From Thalia democratica (Eukaryota), in NCBI GenBank assembly GCA_965202585.1, contig OZ241830.1, positions 39,122,001-39,186,000 on the forward strand: a DNA stretch of 64,000 nt, read 5' to 3'. Of the stretch, positions 11,272 through 52,100 are shown one piece after another; positions within the stretch are counted from its first letter, which is position 1; each line of letters opens with the position of its first letter. The notes under the pieces are model-generated. The model was not told the origin of the DNA, searched no databases, and saw only the letters and a program-made list of their open reading frames with translations. The position numbers were made by a program, and so were the translations under genes.

Positions 11272-14240
11272 CTTGGTTACAATGTAAAAATAATAAGATA
11301 TGAAATAAAAAGCTAGAACTAATGAAATTATAAATAATACATATTTTCCTTTTACACGTCTGTTTTTGGTTGATTTAAACTATGTGTACAACTTTAAAAA
11401 CCATCTAAACATTATAACGTATTGTAGTTTTATATCACAAAGTTTGAGAGTTTTGTCTCGCAAAACAAACAGGAAACAATTTAAAAAATTATAACAACTC
11501 TTAAAAACAAAAACAAACTTTACTTAACTTTACCAAAAAAGCTTTTTAGCTGAGACAAATATAGCTGTTAAGCTAAAACGTTTATTGTAGCGTTCTTAAT
11601 TTTTGTTTAAAAAGTAAAGGCAAACTTTATTTCAATTTATAAATCTTACTGTTTATTTATCTTTTAAATACAACAAGTCCTACTGTTTGTTCAGAAAAAG
11701 CACTCGAACTCTTGGGTTGTTCTTGTTGTTTTGTTAAATCTTCGGCTTGTCCTATACTTTGTCTTTTCGGAATTTCAGCTTCAGCAAGAAACGGGGTGTT
11801 TGTCACTCCGTGGGATGTTATAATCGAAAGGCAGTTGTCCTTCAAATTGATTGAACACTGATGTCTGTGATTTATAAGCTCAGTAATTAAAAAAACAAAC
11901 TTGTAAAATATGGAACAAATTATTTAAATTTAGGTAAACTACGGTGAGCATCAAAACGTTTGATTTAAGAAGAAAGTTGTTAAAAAATTGTTTTTATACA
12001 TTAAAATTTCATATTTTGGCTGACAGAGTATTTTATAAGAAAAAATAATTTGAAAATAATGTTATTTATATTTTTTTTTTATAACGCATTTTTCAATAAA
12101 CTCATAAAATTTGTAGAAAAACTGTTTTACCACCTAAAAATAATTGAATGATGAATAGTTTTATGGTCGTACTATACAATCTAATGCTTACACCACTAGA
12201 ATTATTTAAAATATTGTGAAGTAATTTCTTTATCTGATACAAGTTAATAAACATATTTAACAACCTTCGTAACATATCAAGCCCAATCAACAGTTGCATT
12301 GATTGCTCAGGCATTATTGAAAAAGAAACGGGTAGATGAATGTCTTCAATCTGCAGTTGGGCCAAGTGAACCTTGCCGAGTATCTTTTGCGTGCCGACAC
12401 CTTGAGCCATTCCGCTGAAGCGTTTGTCGAGTAAGCGCATGATGTTGCAGCGTTTTGCGCATTCTGCGCTCATTATTGTCACTTGTGCTCCAGAGTCAAC
12501 GAATGCTGAAAGTAAAAAAATGCCTAGTAAGTTTAAAGATAATTTAGTTTAAAATTTAAGATAAAAATTTAATTTTTAGTTGTAATATAACTATTGGACT
12601 GAAAACCGAAAGTATGTAGTAATGTAAATAAAAGTGTTTAAAATAAACCATATCAAGATTTCAGCGTTAGATAATTGAAAAAAAACTTAAACATATGAAC
12701 ACGAATTTTTAACTATGCTTGTTTTTTAAGCTTTATGAAAAACAAGTATGTTTTGTATACAACTCATAAGTATATCAACTCATGTGCTATTACATATATA
12801 ATTTACCTTTAAAATGATATCCATTGACTTTGACGTTAATCCACAACATTACAACGCTACCAAAACTTTCTGGTGCAGTTTCCATTGCCAGCTCAAAATT
12901 TTCATTTACGTTTCGCTGTTCTAATACATTTGTCATCTTTTCAATATTCAAAAGGTCCATAGCGTTTGAACTTGTAATTTTTCTTTTTGTATTCGTAACC
13001 TTAAAGGTTGACAAATAAGTTAAAGTAACAGAGTTCTTTAACATAATTAAATTTTTTTTACAGCAAATAAATGTTATAACTAGGGACAATGTTTTAAAAA
13101 ATTTAAATCCGGTTTTTATTAGTAATAATTTGTATACAAGTTACAACATTCAACTGCTGGTATTTTATAAAGTTTAACTCATTCATTTGTACTGAACATT
13201 CGTCTTGTCTCGGACAAGACGATCCGATAGCCAAAAAGTTTTTTTGTACACCAGATCTTAAAACCAAATAATTTGAGATGATATTTTTGTCGTTTATCAA
13301 ACAACATGCATCAACAATGAAAATTTATAACTGCTAACCAAAAATTCTATAGTTATAAGTAGCTTAGACCATTAAAATTAAGCAGCCTATTTACTGTCTT
13401 AATTAGAGATTAAATAAAAGAACTTTTAGTATTTTATTAACTTTTAGCAGTCTTAGTCATTGAAAAATAGAACTTCTATTTCATGTCATTGAAGATATTT
13501 AAAAATGGTTACCTTTACATTGGAGAAATCAAGTGCAGGAGCTACATCCATTTCTTCGATGTTCTCTTTTTCCTTTTCTTCCGCCACCTTTACTTTACTC
13601 TGAACATTTGTAAGATTTGAGTTCATGGTTTTTTTATCTGATCCGGGAACCTTAATTGTTTTATTAAAAGTTTTGATGATTCTCATTTATATTTTTAAAA
13701 TAAAGACTAAATAAAAGTGTTTTACTTTTTATACACTCGGTTAAGCTGTTTTATTTTAGTATATTTATATTACTAACACTATGAGGTTAGTAAAACACAA
13801 AAATGATTAAAGAATTATACAAATAGTTTTAGTAAAAAAAGTATTAAAGTTGGATATTGACTTACTTAAAATTGATTAACTTACTTAATTAAAAATCGAA
13901 AAATTGCAAACTGTTATTACTATACAAATTATTTTAACATATTTACCTTTACATTAGAAAAGTCAATCGTAGCGGCTGCATTGGTGGGCAAAGAGGAGTT
14001 TGCTAAAAAACTTTGTTTTATGTTAAGTACTAATAAGTCATCGTTAACAATGTTGAATTCTTTCAACATTTTGTCATTTCCTATCATTTCATTCCCATCC
14101 TTGGAAATTGCTATTTTCTGAACGTCATAAGTCGACGTTTTCTCGCAGCATACTTGTTTCAACTTCAACAAAGTATCACTGCTCGAAACACTGACTTGCA
14201 AAACCTCGTGGGTGCTTTCGTTGTAAATTGTTATATTCAT
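11038..14240 (-). CDS. DDI1: DDI1/DDI2-family protein (UBL - retroviral-like aspartyl protease - UBA), 6 exons, ~426 aa
   Basis: Exons 14240-13947, 13650-13513, 12999-12807, 12505-12265, 11864-11684 and 11271-11038 splice in frame. Hallmarks: N-terminal [22 protein letters not shown], catalytic [37 protein letters not shown], and C-terminal UBA ([34 protein letters not shown]). Confidence 0.95.
11684..11864 (-). CDS. DDI1: DDI1 exon 5
   Basis: CACAG| acceptor gives [15 protein letters not shown]; ACA|GTAGGA donor. Confidence 0.85.
12265..12505 (-). CDS. DDI1: DDI1 exon 4 (RVP catalytic core, DSGAQ)
   Basis: TTTCAG| acceptor restores A-F-V-D-S-G-A-Q upstream of ORF-track 12102-12482. Confidence 0.95.
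12807..12999 (-). CDS. DDI1: DDI1 exon 3
   Basis: Encodes [35 protein letters not shown]; phase-1 donor; acceptor position slightly uncertain. Confidence 0.9.
13150..13305 (-). repeat. Dispersed repeat family C, copy in DDI1 intron 2
   Basis: Shares TGTTT.ATAAACGACAAAAA...ATTTGGT....GA(T/C)CTGGTG(T/C)AC and CGTCTTGTCC with 23285-23450 and 40395-40480; perfect 9-bp hairpin at 13201-13221. Confidence 0.6.
13513..13650 (-). CDS. DDI1: DDI1 exon 2 (linker ending in a second DFSNVK motif)
   Basis: TTAAG| acceptor, AAG|GTAACC donor, 138 nt, phase 0-0. Confidence 0.75.
13947..14240 (-). CDS. DDI1: DDI1 exon 1 (UBL domain)
   Basis: ATG at 14240, ubiquitin-like sequence, AAG|GTAAAT donor. Confidence 0.9.
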
Positions 14241-42268: not shown

Positions 42269-42971
42269 TACAATTTCACCATTATTATTACCTTATCTTC
42301 AGGTCAGTAAAATTATATGCAGTCGTTATGATTCGAAATTTAGAAAATGTTGTTTTATTAAAAACTATTGAAATTTTAGTAATATATTTGTACATCGTTA
42401 AACAATAACTTGAAACTAAAATACGAAAATTTTTGTAATTTTTTTATTATATATGAAACATTTTATTCTAATCTATATATTAATGTAACAAAAGTGTCTA
42501 ATTATTACAACACTGATTATTATCAAAAGCAAATTAGATAAAGATCAGAAGATTACTTTGCTTGTTATGAGAACAATTAAATTCAAACCTTAATACTTGA
42601 TCAGTATCAAAATCAAAGAAAGTTTAAAATAAAAGATATATTAATTAGCCGAAAACAATAATAGTCTAACCTTAACTAATTAGTTCCTTACTTTAAAAGT
42701 ACTATAATTAAAACACAAGAACTGTTGAAAATAAAAATTTGACGTTGTAAATTATTTAAAAATTTATTGAAAAGTGTTCAAATACTATGATTGATGGTAA
42801 TAAAAACTAAACAATGAAAAAATAAAGTATTTAATTACCTTGAAAATTAACAAAAAATGTTTTTAAGGCACGAAAACGCGCTCAAAGCAGTAGCAGGCTC
42901 AAAGCAGTGCAAGTCACAATAAAAAACAATTGCCTAAAAAATTTAAAAATATTTGAGTGTCACCGGATTCG

Positions 42972-44282
42972 TCATAAGCCAGTAACTTGGAAGTCAGCAA
43001 CGACCGGGTAGTGGTCTGAAATTCTTCCGATTTCGTCGGCAACAAAGGCTTTGGAAAGTTTCAAATTTTTGTAGAATATGTGGTCGACGTTGGCAAACCT
43101 GTTCAGCAACGTCGAGTGACTGCTCGCCTTTCTGTCTCCATGGAAACCGCATTTCAACCCCGCCGCCCACAACCAGTCCAGTTGAGATTCTTCCGGGTTC
43201 AAGTTGAAGTCGCCCATCACGACCACGGGGTTGCCAAGTGCACCGGAAGACAGGTTGGCGACCCTGGCTATTTCCTGCATGTGTTCTTCGGACAAGTGCG
43301 TCAAGTTTCCGATCGTCCAGTTTTTGTAGACTGCGTGAACGTTTATGACGTGAAGCTGCCTGTCACCGAGACCGATGTCAAAAACTGTCCTCGTGTACCC
43401 GTAATGGGGCGTCTGCACGTCTTTCTCGACCCCTAAAAGTTTTCCTTCGTGACCCAAAACAGGCAGCTGGCTCACAACACCGACACCTAGCGTTGACTTT
43501 ATCGGAAGGATACCGTCTTGTGCCCTGTACCCAGACAATTGCGCTTCGATTGACCCCATTACGTCCTTGCTTCCCCACATAACCGGCAAGGGATCAGACT
43601 CCTGCAGACCCGCGACGTCGGCCCCTAACTTTTCTACCACCTTGGCAACGCAAGCCGTGTTGTCGCGACCCGTGTAGGTGTGCCCCAGCAACAAGTTCCA
43701 CGTCATCATTCTCAGCGTTCCATTATTTGAGTTTTTCTTCATATTACCCGCAGAAATCTTGCACTCGTGGCGGCATGCGAGCGGAGAAAAACCAAACTGT
43801 GACGTCACAACAGCGATGAGTAACACCGCTACAACGACTGCAATCAAAACAAAAGTTTGACCTTTGCCTCGCTCCGCTCCGTCCCTTTCATGTGCCCGCC
43901 GTTCCCCGCTGATCGCGTGCTTACCGTCGCAAAAGGTCACCGTCGCCAACGACAGCCACATGAAGAGGGCCATGAACAGGATGACGAGTTCGATTCGAGC
44001 GAAAAAGAAGCTGGTCACCTGCCCCAAGCTGAAAGAAATGACGGAGATCAGGTAAGCCAGAAAGCACGCCGCCCCTACGAAATGGGATATTGCTTTGGGG
44101 ACTTTCCCGCTACTGGCGCAAACTCTCGTGTAGGCGTCGATGAGCAGAGGCAGGGAGAAGGGAATGGTGGCTGCTACCATGACAACTGCCTCGCGTCTCC
44201 TCGAGTTGAACGCGAGAACGATCGCGATGGTGACGCACAAAATACAAGCAAATGACGTCATTGACCTTTGAACCGCTCGAAC
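42972..44282 (-). CDS. CWH43-like exon 2 (TM helices plus EEP domain)
   Basis: ORF-track 42972-44294; acceptor TTTTCACAG|; EEP motifs present. Confidence 0.9.
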   Translation of the reverse strand, partial: VRAVQRSMTSFACILCVTIAIVLAFNSRRREAVVMVAATIPFSLPLLIDAYTRVCASSGKVPKAISHFVGAACFLAYLISVISFSLGQVTSFFFARIELVILFMALFMWLSLATVTFCDGKHAISGERRAHERDGAERGKGQTFVLIAVVVAVLLIAVVTSQFGFSPLACRHECKISAGNMKKNSNNGTLRMMTWNLLLGHTYTGRDNTACVAKVVEKLGADVAGLQESDPLPVMWGSKDVMGSIEAQLSGYRAQDGILPIKSTLGVGVVSQLPVLGHEGKLLGVEKDVQTPHYGYTRTVFDIGLGDRQLHVINVHAVYKNWTIGNLTHLSEEHMQEIARVANLSSGALGNPVVVMGDFNLNPEESQLDWLWAAGLKCGFHGDRKASSHSTLLNRFANVDHIFYKNLKLSKAFVADEIGRISDHYPVVADFQVTGL

Positions 44283-46777
44283 CTGTGAAAACAAATGTGT
44301 TAAGTAATTTTAGTTAGATTATTGTGACAAACTTGCAATTTTTTTAATCATACATACTTTTACCTTCTCAGCTTAAACGTATTTTTTTTCATAGTCAATC
44401 ATCTTTAGGTATAACAGTTTTTCAATATTAGATATTTAAGAAAATTATTTTTGAGTTTTCTCTTTAAAAAACATTTTACAGAGTTATAAATAATTAAATT
44501 TTTTGACATATACTGTCTTGTGTAGAATCAACAAAGTTGCTTTTTGTTTTTTAATTAAAAAATACATCGTGGGAATTCTTTTACGAAAAACAAAAAGCTA
44601 ACCACAAGCAGTTGTGGATTTCAACGCGAAAAATATTTTATTTTTCCAAATGTTTAAAACCTGACAATCTTAAACTAATCAAAAATAATCTTGTTAAAAT
44701 TTAAAGCAAGAAGTACAAAAGCAATTAGTTACTTGAATTTTGTATGCAAATGAGTTTTTTTAGTACTATTTAATTGATAATGAAGTTTTCAATAATCAAT
44801 CGAAAATATTGCGCTTTTTTAAGTTAAATATGTAAAAAAGTTCAATTTATTTTTGATGCTTAGTGTCTGCTGAAATTAGTTGTATAATTCAGTTAGTGTT
44901 TCATAATTTAGTATTGTAGTTTGTAAGGTTTTTAACAAAGAGATGCTAATCTTAAATACTAAAAACGAGTTTTAAAAAGTATAATCGTTAACAAAAAAAG
45001 AAATGAATATATTTATATATATGTTTATTCTGAAAGTTTTAGGTTATCATCGTTACATTGCAAATAAGTTTGCAGAACGGTTTATTAATTTAAAATTAAA
45101 CAGGTACTTTAAAAAATGTTTAAGTAAGAAGTTTATGCTATATAAATATTTTGATGATATGTTTTGAGACGTTATTTTGTCTTTGTTAAAAAAACAATGT
45201 AATAACTTAATAACTTTTAGAAACAGTTTAATCTTTAAATACGTTTATCAACTACGTATTTTAATACTAAAAAACAAATGTTAGAAAACATAGCACTGAA
45301 TTTAAATATTTTTCATTAATTAAAATTTATAAGCAAATAAAATTTCCTTTGTTATGAAATATTTCTACCAATTACTGAATTTTATGTGTTCGCACGGAAA
45401 CATCAGAAAGCTTTTAAATACTTTGAAACTTTTCTTAATTCACAGGTGTAAATTGTTTCTCATTGGATTAATATGTGCTTTAAAGTGCATTTAAATGCAA
45501 AAAGTTTAAACATGCTTTGAATAGTTAAAATAATGTATTTACATGTATACACTCGATTACCAGTTTAGATTAAATAAGCCCGTTTTTTTTTTGTGAAAAA
45601 TAATTAAATTTTGTGAAATAAAGCTCACTAAATTACAACTAAAAAGTAAGTGACTTATAACCAAGTACAAAAAACTAACGTTTACGAAAGTCTTCGTTTG
45701 GTTCCCGTCGTCGGCTTTCAAGACTTTGAACTTTCTCGGCGCGCAGTGGGAAAACAGAACGAGGAGCGTCATCAGGGTGTGGAAAGCCACCACGAGCGTC
45801 GCGTTGAGGGGGGTTCTTCCGAGTCCCGACCACCTCAGCAGCTGGTTGGGTGACGACGAGAACTGGCAGAAGAACATGAGGTAGGAAGCGATTCCCGGTG
45901 GTAACACGAACAACACGAAGGAGGTGCCAGCGGCTTTGGTGACGTCATAATCGTCAAACCTCGGTTTCTCGTACAAACTCGACGTTTGGTCCTCGCTGTT
46001 GTAGCCGCTGCTCAAAGACAAACTGCTTTCTCTTGACTTGCCTTTTTTGCCGAGAGATTGCTTTTCCTTCAGGTCGACCAAGACGCTTTCTTCCTGGGTT
46101 TCCATGGAAAGTTCGGTTTTGAGGGTTATGCTTCTGACTTTGACCAGCCCTTCTTCTTCCAGCGAGCTGTTGAGTTGCAGCGAGCTCACGATTTCTAACT
46201 TCTCGGAAAACCTGCCGTTCAAAAGCAACTCAGCGACAGATATCGCTACAACTAGAACCAGAAGAAAAGCAGTCAAGTGCCATTCTTCATACAAAACGTT
46301 GACGGAGCGAGACGTCCACCTCACGCAAACTGAAACGTACAAAACGACCGACACTTTAACAGCCGTGTCGTCCTCGAGTATCGAGCTCTTGTAACGAATG
46401 ACCGAGGGGAGCAGGAACGTGGCTGTTCCCAGAACAACCGTCCTGTAGGAAGCCGTTTCATCGAGGCAGGGAAGCGACGAGGCGAGAAGCAGGCAGGGCT
46501 CGACGAGCGCCCAAAAAACCTGAACATTTTTGTGAAATTTCAAGCGGGTGAGGTGCTCGTTGAATGAAAGCGAGGACGGCGCCACCAAGCACGCCACCAG
46601 CGTCACGACCGGAACCAGCCTGAAACCGAGGGCTGACGGCTCGGTGAGGTGCCAGAAGCAGGCCTCGATGAAGGAAACTGCGGCGTTGAACCCGCACAAG
46701 AGTACGATGACGTCACCCAGCGTTGACAAGCTTGATTGCGCTCTTCCGAGCTTCGAATGCTTTTTTACGCATTCCAT
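42972..46777 (-). CDS. PGAP2-interacting protein / CWH43-like multi-TM protein with C-terminal EEP (exonuclease-endonuclease-phosphatase) domain, 2 exons, ~800 aa
   Basis: Exon 46777-45686 (or -45680; both donors are phase 0) joins CACAG|GTT at 44282 and runs to the stop at 42972. The N-terminal TM region resembles human CWH43 as recalled (VRWTSRSVNVLY vs LRIWYTSLNPIW). The C-terminus has TWN, LQESD, NVH, GDFN, VDHIFY and SDH motifs. Orthology is not established, so no symbol is given. Confidence 0.8.
45686..46777 (-). CDS. CWH43-like exon 1 (TM region plus Ser/Glu-rich loop)
   Basis: ORF-track 45557-46777; GC-rich composition ends at TTC|GTAAAC / AAC|GTTAGT donors; upstream TTTCAG acceptor near 46843. 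Confidence 0.8.
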
Positions 46778-48389
46778 TTTCTCAGAAGTTTGGCAAAATG
46801 TGAAGTTTAGAACTTTTTGGAATCTTAACTATTTTAACTTTCTGAAATAACATGCGTTTTATATACAAATGTTAATTTTTAACGTTTAAAAGCAACTTAG
46901 ATACAGCATTTAACTAAAATACAGTTTTTCGTATTGTAAAGTATCTTGTTTAAATGGACATTATTTGAAGTAAAGACTAAACTTGTACTAATAAAAATGT
47001 ACTTTGTTGTTTTCGGTTTTCTGGATCCAAATTAGAAAACTGTTGACTTAATATAACTTAAAGTACTTATTTTGTCATTTCGCATGCGCTTAAGTAAAGT
47101 TTATGTATGAACAAAATCGAATTACCGTTCGTTACAAGTTTAAATTTCAAAGTAAAAAGTGCAATAAAGTTTCTATGCAGTGTTTTGTTATTCATATGAT
47201 GTTGTTTGAAATTGTTATTTACATGCATGATTAATTTGTTTTTATTTTTAATCTTGTTTATTGTCTTTAACTTGTCTAAACACAAAGCTTCTACTTAACA
47301 AAACTGTTTTTGTTTTTGAGCAATATAAAATACGTAATACAATTTAAAATTTAAAGTCTTTGTTTTCGATTAATGTAACTGCTTGTTTTAATTCAATTTA
47401 ATTTAAGACCATAAAGTCTAAACTTTGACAATTAGTTTTCATACTGTATAGAGGTAGAACTAAAAGCTAATTTTGAAAATAAAGCAAAATGCTGTGAACA
47501 ATTTAAACAGTAATTTAAGATTTAGCTTGAAATCCGAACAGACAATTTCATATAATTTATCAGTTTAATTAGACAAACTCAAGGTTACTGCGACGAATTC
47601 ACTGCCGATAGAAGACTGGTTTGAATTGGAAATTACATAAATCATTCTAATAACTCATGTATCAACTTCAATCACTCTTGTTTTGTCAAGGTTTTACGAA
47701 TTTCAGTAAAAAAGCTTTGAGATCAAAGTAACGAAAGTTATAATTAAATTTGTAAATGTATGAGTTGATTTAATTAAAATTTTTATGAAATATTGAAAAC
47801 ATGCCTTAACGGTATGATTTTATGTACTAAAGTTATAAAGGCCAACTTTTGTGTTTTACAGAAGACTTTAATTAAAGCAATTTGTTTTCAAAATACAAAA
47901 GCTTGCTTAAAATTATACAACTGTTTAGTAGCCTGAAGCAACGAAACAAATTTAAACCAATTTTTTAAAGCCATTACACAGCTTTAGATAATGCTTAAGT
48001 CCTTTATAAGTATGTTCTGAAAATTTTGTAGCGGATTATATACAAATTAAAGTTTTTGTATGGTTTACTACTGCTATTTACAATTTGACTCGTAAGTTAA
48101 ACTAAATGCAAACAGTTTTAAACTTTGTTAATAAAGCTGTCATAATTTATATCTAAATGAAAATATTCAGTTAACTAGCTTTTGAATAAACTTTTACATA
48201 CAAACTAGCATACAACTCGTTGGACCTTTTTTTCAAATGAAATCAAACCTTATAATACCTAGTCAAAACTTTTGAAACCGTGAGCACTAAAAGTAAAGCA
48301 AAAGTAGCAGTTATGAAACGTTAGTTTAATCTTGACAAATTTAAACTTTATTAAATGGGCTTCTATTCAAATCATTCTCACTTAAACAT

Positions 48390-49150
48390 GGTATTTTTAA
48401 GCGGCCGCGAAACACCAACAGCTTTTTGTTGTGTGAACTTTCGAAAACTTTTTAAACCCAAGTAGCACGCGCTTTGCAGTAACAACAATTACGCCGGCCA
48501 GGTGCTGTTTACTAAAACAAACAAAAGAAAAAAAAAACCAAAACAATGACCATCCTTCATCAAGCTGAAATTAAAGCCGCGCACTTTTTTCCTCTCATCA
48601 AAATTAAAACAGTAGCGGGCTTTTAAGCGGCGGAAAAACGCAAGTCCCCGTCTTTGCTGCTAATGTTTGTCAAGGATTTCAAAGAATGATAACTTTCGGC
48701 TAATTGCGAGCAGCACAAAAGCAAAAGCACTGCGCTCCTTTTAACGCGGCAGCAGTTGATTTAATTAAGCGTTTCCGTAAAATCTCGTACCGTGACAACG
48801 TATAAAATGATCAAATTATCTCAATGCTCCTTTAAATCGGTCCATTCATTGCCTCTTTCTTGTGAACTCGAGCTACTTGTTATCTATGAGAAACTTTCAT
48901 CAACATTTGATTGGAAACTTGGTGAAATTTTATAACCAAACATTGTTTTAATTTATATTTTCTTAGCAGTGCCGGTGCGGTTGTTTTATTCAGTTGGCGT
49001 TTTGCTCAAAACTTTGCGGCTCAGCTTTTCTCAGTAAAAGCTTAAACTTTTAAAGTTTCGTAATCCGCTTTTTCAAATATTTATTTTAGTTTTTAGAAGT
49101 ATAATCCCGTCTTGCAACCCAAACAAGCACCGGTTGACTCATGAAATTTT
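48390..49150. promoter_or_regulatory. CpG-rich non-coding island upstream of the CWH43-like gene
   Basis: Dense CpG (GCGGCCGCG, GCCGCGC, GCGGCGG) with no ORF, in an otherwise very AT-rich background. Confidence 0.4.
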
Positions 49151-52100
49151 CTTTAATGACTAATGAGTTTTTTATTAATCTTAGTCCAATGACTAACCTA
49201 AGAAAACAAGTTGTCTTTGAAAAGTGTACATTTTTTTGATAATTTATAGGGAATCCGTGCGGTTATGAGAACGAATTTTGTAGATTTTAAAATACCTTAG
49301 AAACTAATAAAGTTTTAATTTAGAAAAATTAAAAAACTAAAATTATGAGTTTATATAGACGAGTTGTGTTCGATACAATTTTCAATAAATAACAATAAAA
49401 AATAAACTGTAATGGTAAAATTTAGTAACTTAAACTAAAAATTTGTTATTAAAAAGATGCTAAAAAGAGTCGTTTGTAAAAAAGTATTTTGAATAAAACG
49501 CTTATTGATAAGCAGTCACCTTAACTATTACTTGAATAGGCTTTAAAGTGAACAATGATCGAGTAATTTATTGAGTTATTGATATCACTTTATTTGCACT
49601 CCATAAAGAACTTATTTGTACAGTCACAGAATAGTTTATAACAACAAAAAGGGTATATCTTTACAAAGAGAAGTTTTGATGAATATCTTGTTTGTAAAGC
49701 AAATAGTGCAACAAAAGAAACTAGCAATTTTTAAAATTGATATTTTGAATGTTCGACTCTTGTGACCTGTTATGTTGACAAAATTATTTTTAGTCATAAT
49801 TTTAAATGAAATTTATTTTTAGTTATTTCAAGACTTTTTTTTTCTTAATATCTAAAACCTTAAACTGTCTTGATGTAGCATGTTCTTTTTAATTTACGTA
49901 ATGTTTGTATATAGCAAGCTAAATTAACACAAACTTGAGAAATTATATAAATATATAAAGCTATCACCATGACTTAAAAGTAATTACTAATATAAATGCT
50001 TATCTTCGTTTATATAAATATCCTTACTTTAAGTACTAAAGAGTCTTAAGTTATATCTTCGCTATAAATCGTTTCTATATAAAATTTTTCTAAAAATTAA
50101 GAGAGTAACATTGTAAGAAATCAAACAGACTTTAGTTAGTTATAATCTAAGAAAAAACAATTTTCCGAATAAAAGCTGAAACTTGAAACTGATATTAACG
50201 TATATATTTTAGAAAAAACAATTTAACCTTTATAGTATTTTTTTTTAATTGTTTACAAATTTTAGTTTGACTTCCAATTCCAGCAACGCTCAACAAAGAC
50301 AACTTAAAACTGTCGCTCACACTCAAGCCTTGAAAAAAATATCTGATCTCAAATCGTAAACAAAACGCTCGAAACTTCTGACTGGCCAACAACAACTTAG
50401 GACAGATCTGTCTGGCGACTGGAGCGACGCTAATGCACTTCAACAACTACAGCAACGAAATAAAAACGAGCAGTCGCCAAAAAAGAGAGAAGAGAGACAA
50501 AAGGCAGCAGCGATAAGCGACGCATTAGCCGACAGTTTAGCCACTCAGCAGTCGAAACATGAAAGTGGGCAGCGACATCGCAATAAGCTTAAGTATACAT
50601 CTCAAGTCGGCCTCTTTCCGCTTTCAACTTGAAATGCGCTCCCAACGCGCGTAAGTGGTCAACAAATTTTTCGAACTTGCTTGCGTTGCACGCTTTTTTG
50701 TGATTTTTTTTTGTTTCGGCTGGCGTATCTTTGCCGCTTTCTCATTTAGCTGTAAATTTTTTGAATTGTTGTGCACACAAGTTCTTTTTGAAATATTTTG
50801 TCTTTTGAACGTTTCGTAATACATTGTAAAGTTTAAAAACTATTATTTGAAAGTAACTTTTTTTTCCATTAAAAGCATTATTGACTTCCGCCAATGCACT
50901 ACTTTGTGTTTTGAAAAGCTTAAAATATTTCGAAGCGTCGTGATAGTTTAGTTCGCGTTCAAGCAGCAAAGTCTGACAACTCACAGTTATCTTTAAACTA
51001 ATACTTCATTATTGGTGATCGATAGATGGTTAAGTATGACAATATCTCTTTAAATCTTTACTGACTTATCTAAAAATATATTTTTGAAGCAGATTTGTTT
51101 CCCAAGTTGTTCAAGCTGAACTGATTCGAAAAAACTATAAAGTTATGTTTCTAATACAATGAATAACATATTTTGTCAATAATAAGATTAAGTTGTTGAT
51201 GTACTCGCTTTTTTCTATCAAGAAGATTAACTAAAATTTTGTCTCTATTTTTTTATTGATATAAAACTTAAAAGCTGAAAATTGAGTTTTGTATAAAAAA
51301 TGTTCAAAAAATAAATGTCTTTTAAAAAATGAAAACAAATTTAACAAGTGACTCCAGTTGCTTTGACTAAACTTAAAATAAAATACTGATGTGAATAGTA
51401 GTAAAAATTTATTAAACTGATTTGTTTAACCGAAAATTATTTTTTAATTTTTTTTATTTGTTTAGTACTTTCACAAATAAAAATGTTATTTAGAACAATG
51501 TTATAACTAGAGGTTTTATTAGTAAATTAAAAACAAACTTTCAACATTCAATTATAAAAATGTTTTGTTCAAACTGTTATGCAATGAAATTTTATTCAAA
51601 ACCTGTATCAAATATATTAAAAATATTATCTATATAGAATACAGGAAAAAGTATATAGTAAAAATAAAAAAGTAACATAGATACTTCATTAAACTAGCAA
51701 AAACAACAAACATTTAGTAAATTTTGTGTTAAGCAGCTCTCACATTTTTACAAAATCTGTTTAACCAACTACACAACGAAATTAAACTGTCAATACAATT
51801 TAGTAAAGCTTGCATATACTGAATGATCTAATACGAACGTCTGTTCTTATGGTAAAAGGAGAGAATTACTAACTTGAGAGAGCATTAAATAGAAAAAACG
51901 CTCGATGTAAAATCTTCAAGCCATTTAGAAAGATAATGGTAAAATACGTGATCAATGATTATCATATATTTACTTACTAATTTAAGTTTAAGTGTTCAAA
52001 ATTCAGAAACCATAAACGGCTATCACATTAAACTTGGTTTAACTTTAACTTAAACTGAAAAAACTTTTAAAACGAAAAGTTTTACTTAGTATACACCGTT

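Follow-up and report, generated by a model that had tools for sequence, protein, structure and literature searches.

A PGAP2IP-like transmembrane protein lineage with an intact EEP catalytic set, named so far from tunicates and multiplied in Thalia democratica

Cwh43p is needed for ceramide in the glycosylphosphatidylinositol (GPI) anchors of yeast, and variants of human CWH43 have been linked to normal-pressure hydrocephalus; to our knowledge the chemistry of Cwh43p and PGAP2IP has not been settled. In human PGAP2IP (CWH43, Q9H720), and likewise towards the C-terminus of fungal Cwh43p, two transmembrane (TM) domains precede an endonuclease/exonuclease/phosphatase (EEP) domain, and here we describe a gene whose product appears to have the same module order, on the minus strand of a 64,000-nucleotide stretch of the Thalia democratica genome (contig OZ241830.1, positions 39,122,001 to 39,186,000; the whole stretch is called the window, and its positions are counted from its first letter). 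The protein belongs to a catalytically intact, PGAP2IP-like TM-EEP lineage whose named members are all tunicates, and which in this genome is expanded beside a dead paralogue.

The EEP cluster that contains Cwh43p and PGAP2IP also contains sugar enzymes that remove phosphorylcholine (PC) or phosphoethanolamine (PE), and it lies next to the sphingomyelinases (PMC10704324). The only enzyme of that cluster characterised biochemically is the GlcNAc phosphodiesterase (GlcNAc-PDase), which removes phosphorylcholine or phosphoethanolamine from GlcNAc-6-P, and in which alanine replacement of six metal-site positions abolished most of the activity at five, the Glu being the exception (PMC10704324). Its residues N60, E89, D204, N206, D266 and H267 correspond, when matched without a direct alignment, to N562, E594, D724, N726, D789 and H790 of the window protein. 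The two differ in that GlcNAc-PDase is a soluble, secreted bacterial enzyme with no TM segment, whereas the window protein has ~13 of them ahead of its EEP domain.

Two further groups are close to this protein. Multi-TM EEP proteins from prokaryotic metagenome-assembled genomes (MAGs) and protists, which PMC10704324 mentions as the 'Asgard/Chloroflexota group' without studying them, include the P0025/P0055 group, Acrasis KAL0488617.1 and a Mastigamoeba protein; they resemble the tunicate proteins in their intact catalytic set, their TM+TM+EEP layout and their side of the tree, but share only 20-30% identity with the window protein and differ from the tunicate clade in its hallmarks, a HAVYKNWT sequon, a long acidic/Ser linker and a FIEAxxWHxTEP motif in the first TM domain. 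Neutral sphingomyelinases and the bacterial sphingomyelinase C/beta-hemolysin (PDB 8j2f, 2ddr, 3k55) share the EEP fold and the catalytic residues, act on a lipid phosphodiester and associate with membranes, although their anchoring is different, and their likeness to the window protein, an intact EEP set working at a membrane, is one of mechanism only.

A preliminary description of the window had listed six EEP motifs, all of which were recovered at the positions given there when read on the minus strand and mapped by script; they lie in a single open frame of 440 codons (42972-44294). In Pfam this frame matches Exo_endo_phos (PF03372) over the entire profile (1-225/225), scoring 55.8 bits (E 7e-15) where the cut-off is 24.5, and the motif set is not a product of chance. 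The window has a G+C content of ~22%, against which the two coding exons of the gene stand out as blocks of ~50%, one at 43-44 kb and the other at 46-47 kb. Their splicing joins 366 and 436 codons between KTFVN and VRAVQ, giving an 802-residue protein in which a hydropathy scan finds ~13 TM segments, in agreement with the multi-TM region fused to EEP and the spliced product of ~800 residues that had been proposed. The N-terminus encoded by exon 1 is colinear with those of the paralogues described below and of the Ciona, Clavelina and Styela proteins.

Two independent lines confirmed the splice. Specifically, the 693-residue protein P0144, encoded without an intron on a 2196-nt JGI contig and 75% identical to the window protein, aligns across the junction without a gap, and a 1125-nt marine metatranscriptome contig (run X1, record 6) covers 43678-44279 and 45677-46198 with minus-strand GT..AG borders, linking 44279 to 45677 and omitting exactly 1397 bases ('cut +3'). 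Exon 1 is covered by RNA contigs at 45677-46198 and 46301-46721, and the remaining RNA contigs that match the gene fall on exons. These contigs diverge from the window by ~5%, with 26 of the 40 listed differences being synonymous, as are all 13 of those listed in the EEP domain. From the RNA, the splice and the synonymous changes we conclude that the gene is real, transcribed, spliced and under purifying selection, and the same evidence rules out a pseudogene or an annotation artefact.

Two observations on the locus itself were made alongside. A>G and T>C changes account for 52 of the 86 differences tallied between the run X1 contigs and window positions 42900-46850, a pattern that would read as divergence between populations or sister species and not as editing, given the share of synonymous changes among the listed differences. 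Upstream of the gene, patches at 48400-48800 and 50300-50700 reach ~34% G+C per kb bin over the ~22% background and carry no long open frames; since a good acceptor (ttatttcag) precedes the exon with the ATG, either patch may hold a promoter or an untranslated exon at the 5' end.

The EEP domain of the window protein is complete at all eight catalytic positions (N562, E594, H682, D724, N726, D766, D789 and H790), and the same residues are nearly invariant across a 112-sequence alignment of homologues, the full N-E-H-D-N-D-D-H set being present in 24 of the 25 sequences of the tunicate clade and in 84 of the 93 other homologues. AlphaFold2 modelled the domain alone with a pLDDT (predicted local distance difference test) of 93.5, and the product of exon 2 with a mean pLDDT of 86.7 and a pTM (predicted template modelling score) of 0.83, placing packed long helices at 2-26, 31-57, 60-85, 97-125 and 129-162 ahead of the EEP fold. 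The model has the four-layer alpha/beta sandwich of the superfamily, with 297 PDB matches at E <= 0.001, the top ones all EEP enzymes; among these neighbours in the PDB are a Bacteroides mannosyl-6-phosphatase and the neutral sphingomyelinase of humans. With the EEP domain as a single sequence, phmmer returned nothing at E <= 1 from the PDB sequences, so that solved structures were reached only with the family profile; the sphingomyelinase structures then appeared at E 1e-10 to 1e-20 and with Foldseek TM-scores of ~0.7, ranking below CWH43/PGAP2IP.

Indeed, the four best Swiss-Prot matches of the EEP model in Foldseek were S. pombe cwh43, S. cerevisiae CWH43, and mouse and human PGAP2IP, with TM-scores of 0.79-0.80 at 16-19% identity. 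The exon-2 model also aligned with a chordate PGAP2IP cluster in the ESM Atlas (TM-score 0.68 over 374 residues, query 4-436) and with an actinobacterial TM-EEP cluster (TM-score 0.70 over 379 residues), and a language-model search returned the same families as these structural matches.

For the membrane part the evidence came from profile comparisons with hhalign. The tunicate TM region with the EEP domain removed aligned with MAG proteins carrying both PGAP2IP TM domains (PF23022 and PF23021) at 97.6% probability and E 3.4e-12, over 337 colinear columns. Taken separately, the first TM domain (D1) matched the MAG proteins at their PF23022 region (88.5%, E 2.7e-6) and the second (D2) matched them at their PF23021 region (95.1%, E 3.2e-8); against a canonical profile made of fungal CWH43 and the metagenomic protein P0135, D1 was not significant, and D2 scored 92.3% and E 5.4e-7 at residues 190-349 of P0135, the same place as the PF23021 match of that protein (186-348). 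A reversed control was not significant. D2 has one additional helix ahead of the EEP domain, and the hydrophilic linker between D1 and D2, which is probably cytosolic in the orientation favoured below, varies in length between paralogues. The window protein thus appears to have the three-module architecture of PGAP2IP and the CWH43 C-terminal part (6-TM, 6-TM, C-terminal EEP), and the similarity of its TM region, on which the earlier proposal depended, is significant by profile-profile comparison, to the PGAP2IP-like MAG proteins and, for D2, to the canonical profile.

What separates it from canonical CWH43/PGAP2IP is the catalytic set. The canonical sequences were reached through a profile search that led to Laccaria CWH43 and a follow-up search that gave 120 CWH43 proteins of Agaricomycetes (basidiomycetes), nearly all with Frag1, the domains 6TM_1st and 6TM_2nd, and the PGAP2IP EEP domain; 15 of them, all having this complete set of domains, were aligned together with P0135 (L033) and served as proxies for the human and S. 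cerevisiae proteins. P0135 is a metagenomic protein of 653 residues without Frag1, which scores 243.5 bits with PF23226, 102 with PF23021 and 69.5 with PF23022.

All 15 fungal proteins read T-E-H-Y-V-E-D-T at the eight catalytic positions, with TWN replaced by IWT, GDFN by GYVV, DH by EY and SDH by TDT, and P0135 follows the same pattern (IWT, LLE, AHF, GYVV, CEY, SDT). In the canonical sequences reached, therefore, five of the eight EEP catalytic residues are replaced, and the statement in the preliminary description that human and yeast CWH43 are degenerate at GDFN and SDH was borne out in these proxies; in the literature we found no usable statement on the catalytic state of CWH43/PGAP2IP. 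The human protein probably has substitutions like those of P0135, which are not counted as evidence here. The window protein carries N, E, H, D, N, D, D, H where the canonical signature is T, E, H, Y, V, E, D, T, shares 16-19% EEP identity with the canonical proteins, falls in a separate clade and has no Frag1, which fungal Cwh43p possesses.

To place the protein among its relatives, 1.84 billion representative proteins were searched exhaustively with phmmer, which gave 143 matches at E <= 1e-3, 16 of them at E <= 1e-30. The best matches that carry a name are 'uncharacterized' ascidian proteins from Ciona intestinalis (LOC100186503, 813 residues), Clavelina lepadiformis (894 and 803 residues) and Styela clava (954 residues). 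Both exons find their counterparts in the same order in the full-length ascidian proteins, which also share the FIEAxxWHxTEP motif near the N-terminus. The other top matches are unnamed open reading frames of 400-460 residues, equivalent to exon 2, which group with the ascidian proteins in the tree. Among the weaker matches were EEP proteins with several TM segments, from prokaryotic MAGs and from the protists Mastigamoeba and Acrasis, as well as short soluble bacterial EEP proteins; nearly all of these keep GDxN and SDH. A homologue search with the Ciona orthologue as the query returned only the Ciona orthologue itself.

Two trees were built, a quick one from 122 EEP domains and a careful maximum-likelihood one (IQ-TREE) from 50 D2+EEP sequences, and both recovered a single tunicate clade, with a support of 100/99 in the careful tree. 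This clade lies within a group of intact protist and metagenomic proteins (99/95), whereas the canonical degenerate clade (100/100) pairs with the intact PGAP2IP-like MAG proteins of the P0025/P0055 group ('Candidatus ...' records) at 82/77. Forcing the tunicate and canonical clades together cost 49.6 log-likelihood units (approximately unbiased (AU) test, p-AU 7e-7), or 29.8 units (p-AU 4.5e-4) when the metagenomic protein P0024, which sits on a long branch inside the tunicate clade in the careful tree, was included. Long branches are present in these trees, whose canonical members are Agaricomycete proteins and P0135 and not animal PGAP2IP.

In the tree and the AU tests, with this sampling, the tunicate proteins did not nest within the canonical orthologues. 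The phylogeny therefore upholds the earlier proposal of a distinct intact subfamily, and the phmmer matches, the hhalign results for the TM region and the careful tree likewise show that the intact TM-EEP proteins of protists and prokaryotes are closer to it than the canonical clade is. A separate clade from canonical PGAP2IP, with named members that are all tunicates, is in our view strongly supported by the sequences, and the gene family is apparently restricted to tunicates. The grouping of the degenerate clade (P0135 and fungal CWH43) with intact MAG proteins, and not with the intact eukaryotic ones, hints that eukaryotes may hold two old lineages of the PGAP2IP architecture. In the quick tree the sister group of the tunicate clade consists of four intact metagenomic TM-EEP proteins (P0024, P0029, P0031 and P0113; L034), which the careful tree places inside the clade; if they are not from tunicates, the clade is not strictly tunicate-restricted.

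How the lineage came to be in tunicates can be read in two ways, as horizontal transfer from a protist or prokaryote into the tunicate stem or as an old eukaryotic paralogue lost in the other animals. Transfer would fit the finding that tunicates are the only animals among the named members in the 1.84-billion set, that the nearest outgroups are protist, metagenomic and MAG proteins, and that the gene is of simple build, a single phase-0 intron dividing two large exons; the tunicate cellulose synthase is an accepted precedent for such an acquisition. However, of the outgroups with a name the closest, Mastigamoeba and Acrasis, are eukaryotes, and long EEP proteins of eukaryotic type are found in AlphaFold DB clusters among the structural neighbours, so that vertical descent with losses is equally possible; support at the deep nodes is modest (81-92), and a donor cannot be named. 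We regard horizontal transfer as possible but doubtful.

It is in our judgement unlikely that the window protein is simply a fast-evolving tunicate orthologue of animal PGAP2IP with the canonical role in GPI-anchor lipid remodelling, its separation being an artefact of long branches or of sampling. In favour of it, the three modules appear to be the same, the chordate PGAP2IP cluster is matched in structure, fast evolution is well known for tunicate proteins, and animal PGAP2IP is not represented in the tree. Moreover, the family may fill the canonical role, since we detected no other PGAP2IP-like gene in the genome: a separate canonical CWH43, whose presence the preliminary description had left to be checked, was not found in the 802-Mb assembly, where PF23021 and PF23022 gave no match, and fungal CWH43 and P0135 matched only the family of the window gene, while PF10277, used as a positive control, found multi-exon genes and so showed that exon-wise detection works. 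Against this, the canonical clade shares five catalytic substitutions that are absent from every intact tunicate protein, so that, had they descended from an ancestor of canonical type, five catalytic positions would have had to revert; both AU tests reject the joint clade, and the tunicate proteins group with the intact protist ones.

We therefore favour the reading that the gene encodes an active membrane phosphodiesterase of a PGAP2IP-like but non-canonical lineage, and consider it likely, with the activity, the topology and the class of substrate being predicted. The full catalytic set in a confidently modelled EEP fold leads us to expect Mg2+-dependent in-line hydrolysis of a phosphodiester, the metal being held by N562, E594, D724, N726 and D789, and H790 acting as the general base, oriented by D766; in-line, metal-dependent chemistry of this kind is known from DNase I, APE1 and Bc-SMase. 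A Lys/Arg-rich loop before the last TM helix, a conserved NWT sequon in the EEP domain and a Cys pair after the last helix suggest that the domain is on the lumenal or exoplasmic face, where it would be held against its own TM bundle.

The substrate would then be the head-group phosphodiester of a membrane lipid or glycolipid, which is likely because the EEP domain is fused to, and modelled against, a bundle of 12-13 helices. Candidates are the phosphoinositol or ethanolamine-phosphate of GPI, a sphingophospholipid, or a PC/PE-substituted glycoconjugate, any one of which is at best a tentative choice. That the domain is instead a nuclease or phosphatase tethered to the membrane, with nucleic acid or a soluble phosphoester as its substrate, is very improbable, for although the same fold and residues serve nucleases, deadenylases and TDP2, and Nocturnin, TDP2 and CNOT6L are among the PDB structural matches, the nearest neighbours in structure and sequence are CWH43/PGAP2IP, TM-EEP proteins, sphingomyelinases and sugar-phosphodiesterases, and a membrane substrate better fits a helix bundle that packs against the EEP domain in the model.

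Several points weigh against an active, non-canonical phosphodiesterase as we propose it. Intact residues do not prove activity, which is predicted for the clade as a whole; the topology is deduced from charge and sequons only, and the positive-inside pattern appears mixed in the middle loops; and no result of the analysis bears on the substrate. The clades compared in the AU tests were named only once the tree was known, and the canonical clade consists of Agaricomycetes and one metagenomic protein, in an alignment without animal PGAP2IP. In Pfam, neither TM domain is matched directly (hmmscan with PF23022 and PF23021), and the window protein reaches 25.6 bits with PF23226 (cut-off 27, profile positions 4-96 only); the Ciona orthologue scores 38.3 bits against the 243.5 of canonical P0135. 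We also considered that the PF23226 matches of intact proteins might end before the GDFN position, and dropped this idea when position mapping showed that they extend past it. With exon 1 as the query, Pfam gave no match.

Since both exons were searched against the same assembly, the paralogues could be followed through the genome, with a result of six intact copies (A to F, the window gene being A), one catalytically dead copy (G) and one fragment, all listed in Table 1. The two-exon, phase-0 structure is found in all copies, with one further N-terminal split in D. In the quick tree copies A to F form one clade with unnamed orthologues from related organisms, apart from the ascidian sequences, so that the expansion took place in the lineage of this organism. 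Copies B and C, near-identical and ~200 kb apart on one contig (L026, L027), are a recent duplication, and the copy on the small contig C657 is most likely the other haplotype of the window locus and not a separate gene. In copy G the EEP positions read N-N-E-N-N-gap-K-E, with E594 replaced by N, H682 by E, D724 by N, D766 by a gap, D789 by K and H790 by E; it looks like a pseudoenzyme, and it degenerated independently of the canonical CWH43/PGAP2IP pattern. The fragment on C9 is probably a decayed copy.

Paired active and degenerate scaffolds, including intact and dead paralogues in one genome, offer a way to find the substrate that reaches the EEP pocket from the TM bundle, and they open the question of whether the canonical proteins are non-hydrolytic derivatives, transferase-like or binding. 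Few gene families are confined, within the animals, to tunicates, and the family of the window gene is in addition a candidate for this group. A broader proposal, about which we are sceptical, is that tunicates are without the canonical degenerate PGAP2IP and carry instead an old or horizontally acquired, competent sister lineage, since multiplied, whose enzymes would hydrolyse GPI anchors, sphingophospholipids or PC/PE-decorated glycoconjugates in a step for which no other animal uses this fold; if true, it would provide a natural 'active' PGAP2IP scaffold with which to find what the scaffold binds.

Table 1 Coding structure, protein domains and motifs of the window gene (window positions), and its copies in the assembly (contig positions)
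Feature	Position	Strand	Identity to window protein	Description
Coding exon 1	45680..46777	-		ATG at 46777, 366 codons, donor AAC/GTTAGT after 45680, phase 0 (open reading frame and translation); holds D1, the Ser/Glu-rich linker and helices 1 and 2 of D2
Intron	44283..45679	-		1397 bases, GT..AG, AT-rich; RNA contig and P0144 alignment
Coding exon 2	42972..44282	-		436 codons plus stop at 42972-42974, acceptor ttttcacag/GTT, phase 0; holds five TM helices and the EEP domain
D1, first TM domain	46208..46777	-		Residues 1-190, ~6 helices, putative counterpart of 6TM_1st_PGAP2IP (hydropathy and hhalign)
Ser/Glu/Lys-rich hydrophilic linker	45923..46207	-		Residues 191-285 (composition)
D2, second TM domain	43800..45922	-		Residues 286-527, coding 45680-45922 and 43800-44282 with the intron between; counterpart of 6TM_2nd_PGAP2IP
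EEP domain	42975..43748	-		Residues 545-802 (PF03372, AlphaFold2, Foldseek)
TWN	43695..43703	-		Metal-binding Asn N562; alignment column N15 nearly invariant
LQESD	43593..43607	-		Metal-binding Glu E594; column E47 invariant
NVH	43335..43343	-		H682; column H135 nearly invariant
KNWT sequon, clade-typical	43314-43325	-		After NVH; kept in most tunicate sequences
GDFN	43203..43214	-		D724 and N726; G-Y-V-V in the canonical clade
VDHIF	43074..43088	-		D766; C-E-Y-I-F in the canonical clade
SDH	43011..43019	-		D789 and catalytic H790; T-D-T or S-D-T in the canonical clade
Copy A	window, C6:39.165 Mb			Intact
Haplotig	C657:17524-21305		98-99%, both exons	Intact; small contig (L008, L018)
Copy B	C1:12.318 Mb (12317819-12320772)		57%	Intact
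Copy C	C1:12.519 Mb (12518508-12521977)		56%	Intact
Copy D	C1:72.84 Mb		40%	Intact
Copy E	C1:47.85 Mb		32%	Intact
Copy F	C6:42.32 Mb		28%	Intact
Copy G	C1:49.53 Mb (49531500-49535400)		22%	Open 732-residue frame, two-exon layout (L031)
Fragment	C9:50.03 Mb (50029158-50029593)		62% to last 145 residues	Two frames, internal TAA (L014, L015, L032)

Finally, an Rfam search of the window found no RNA family, and elsewhere in it a ubiquitin-like domain (PF00240) and an Asp_protease domain of retropepsin type (PF09668, E 2.6e-30) are encoded jointly by three open frames on the minus strand (12102-14240), which is how a DDI1-type gene is laid out.

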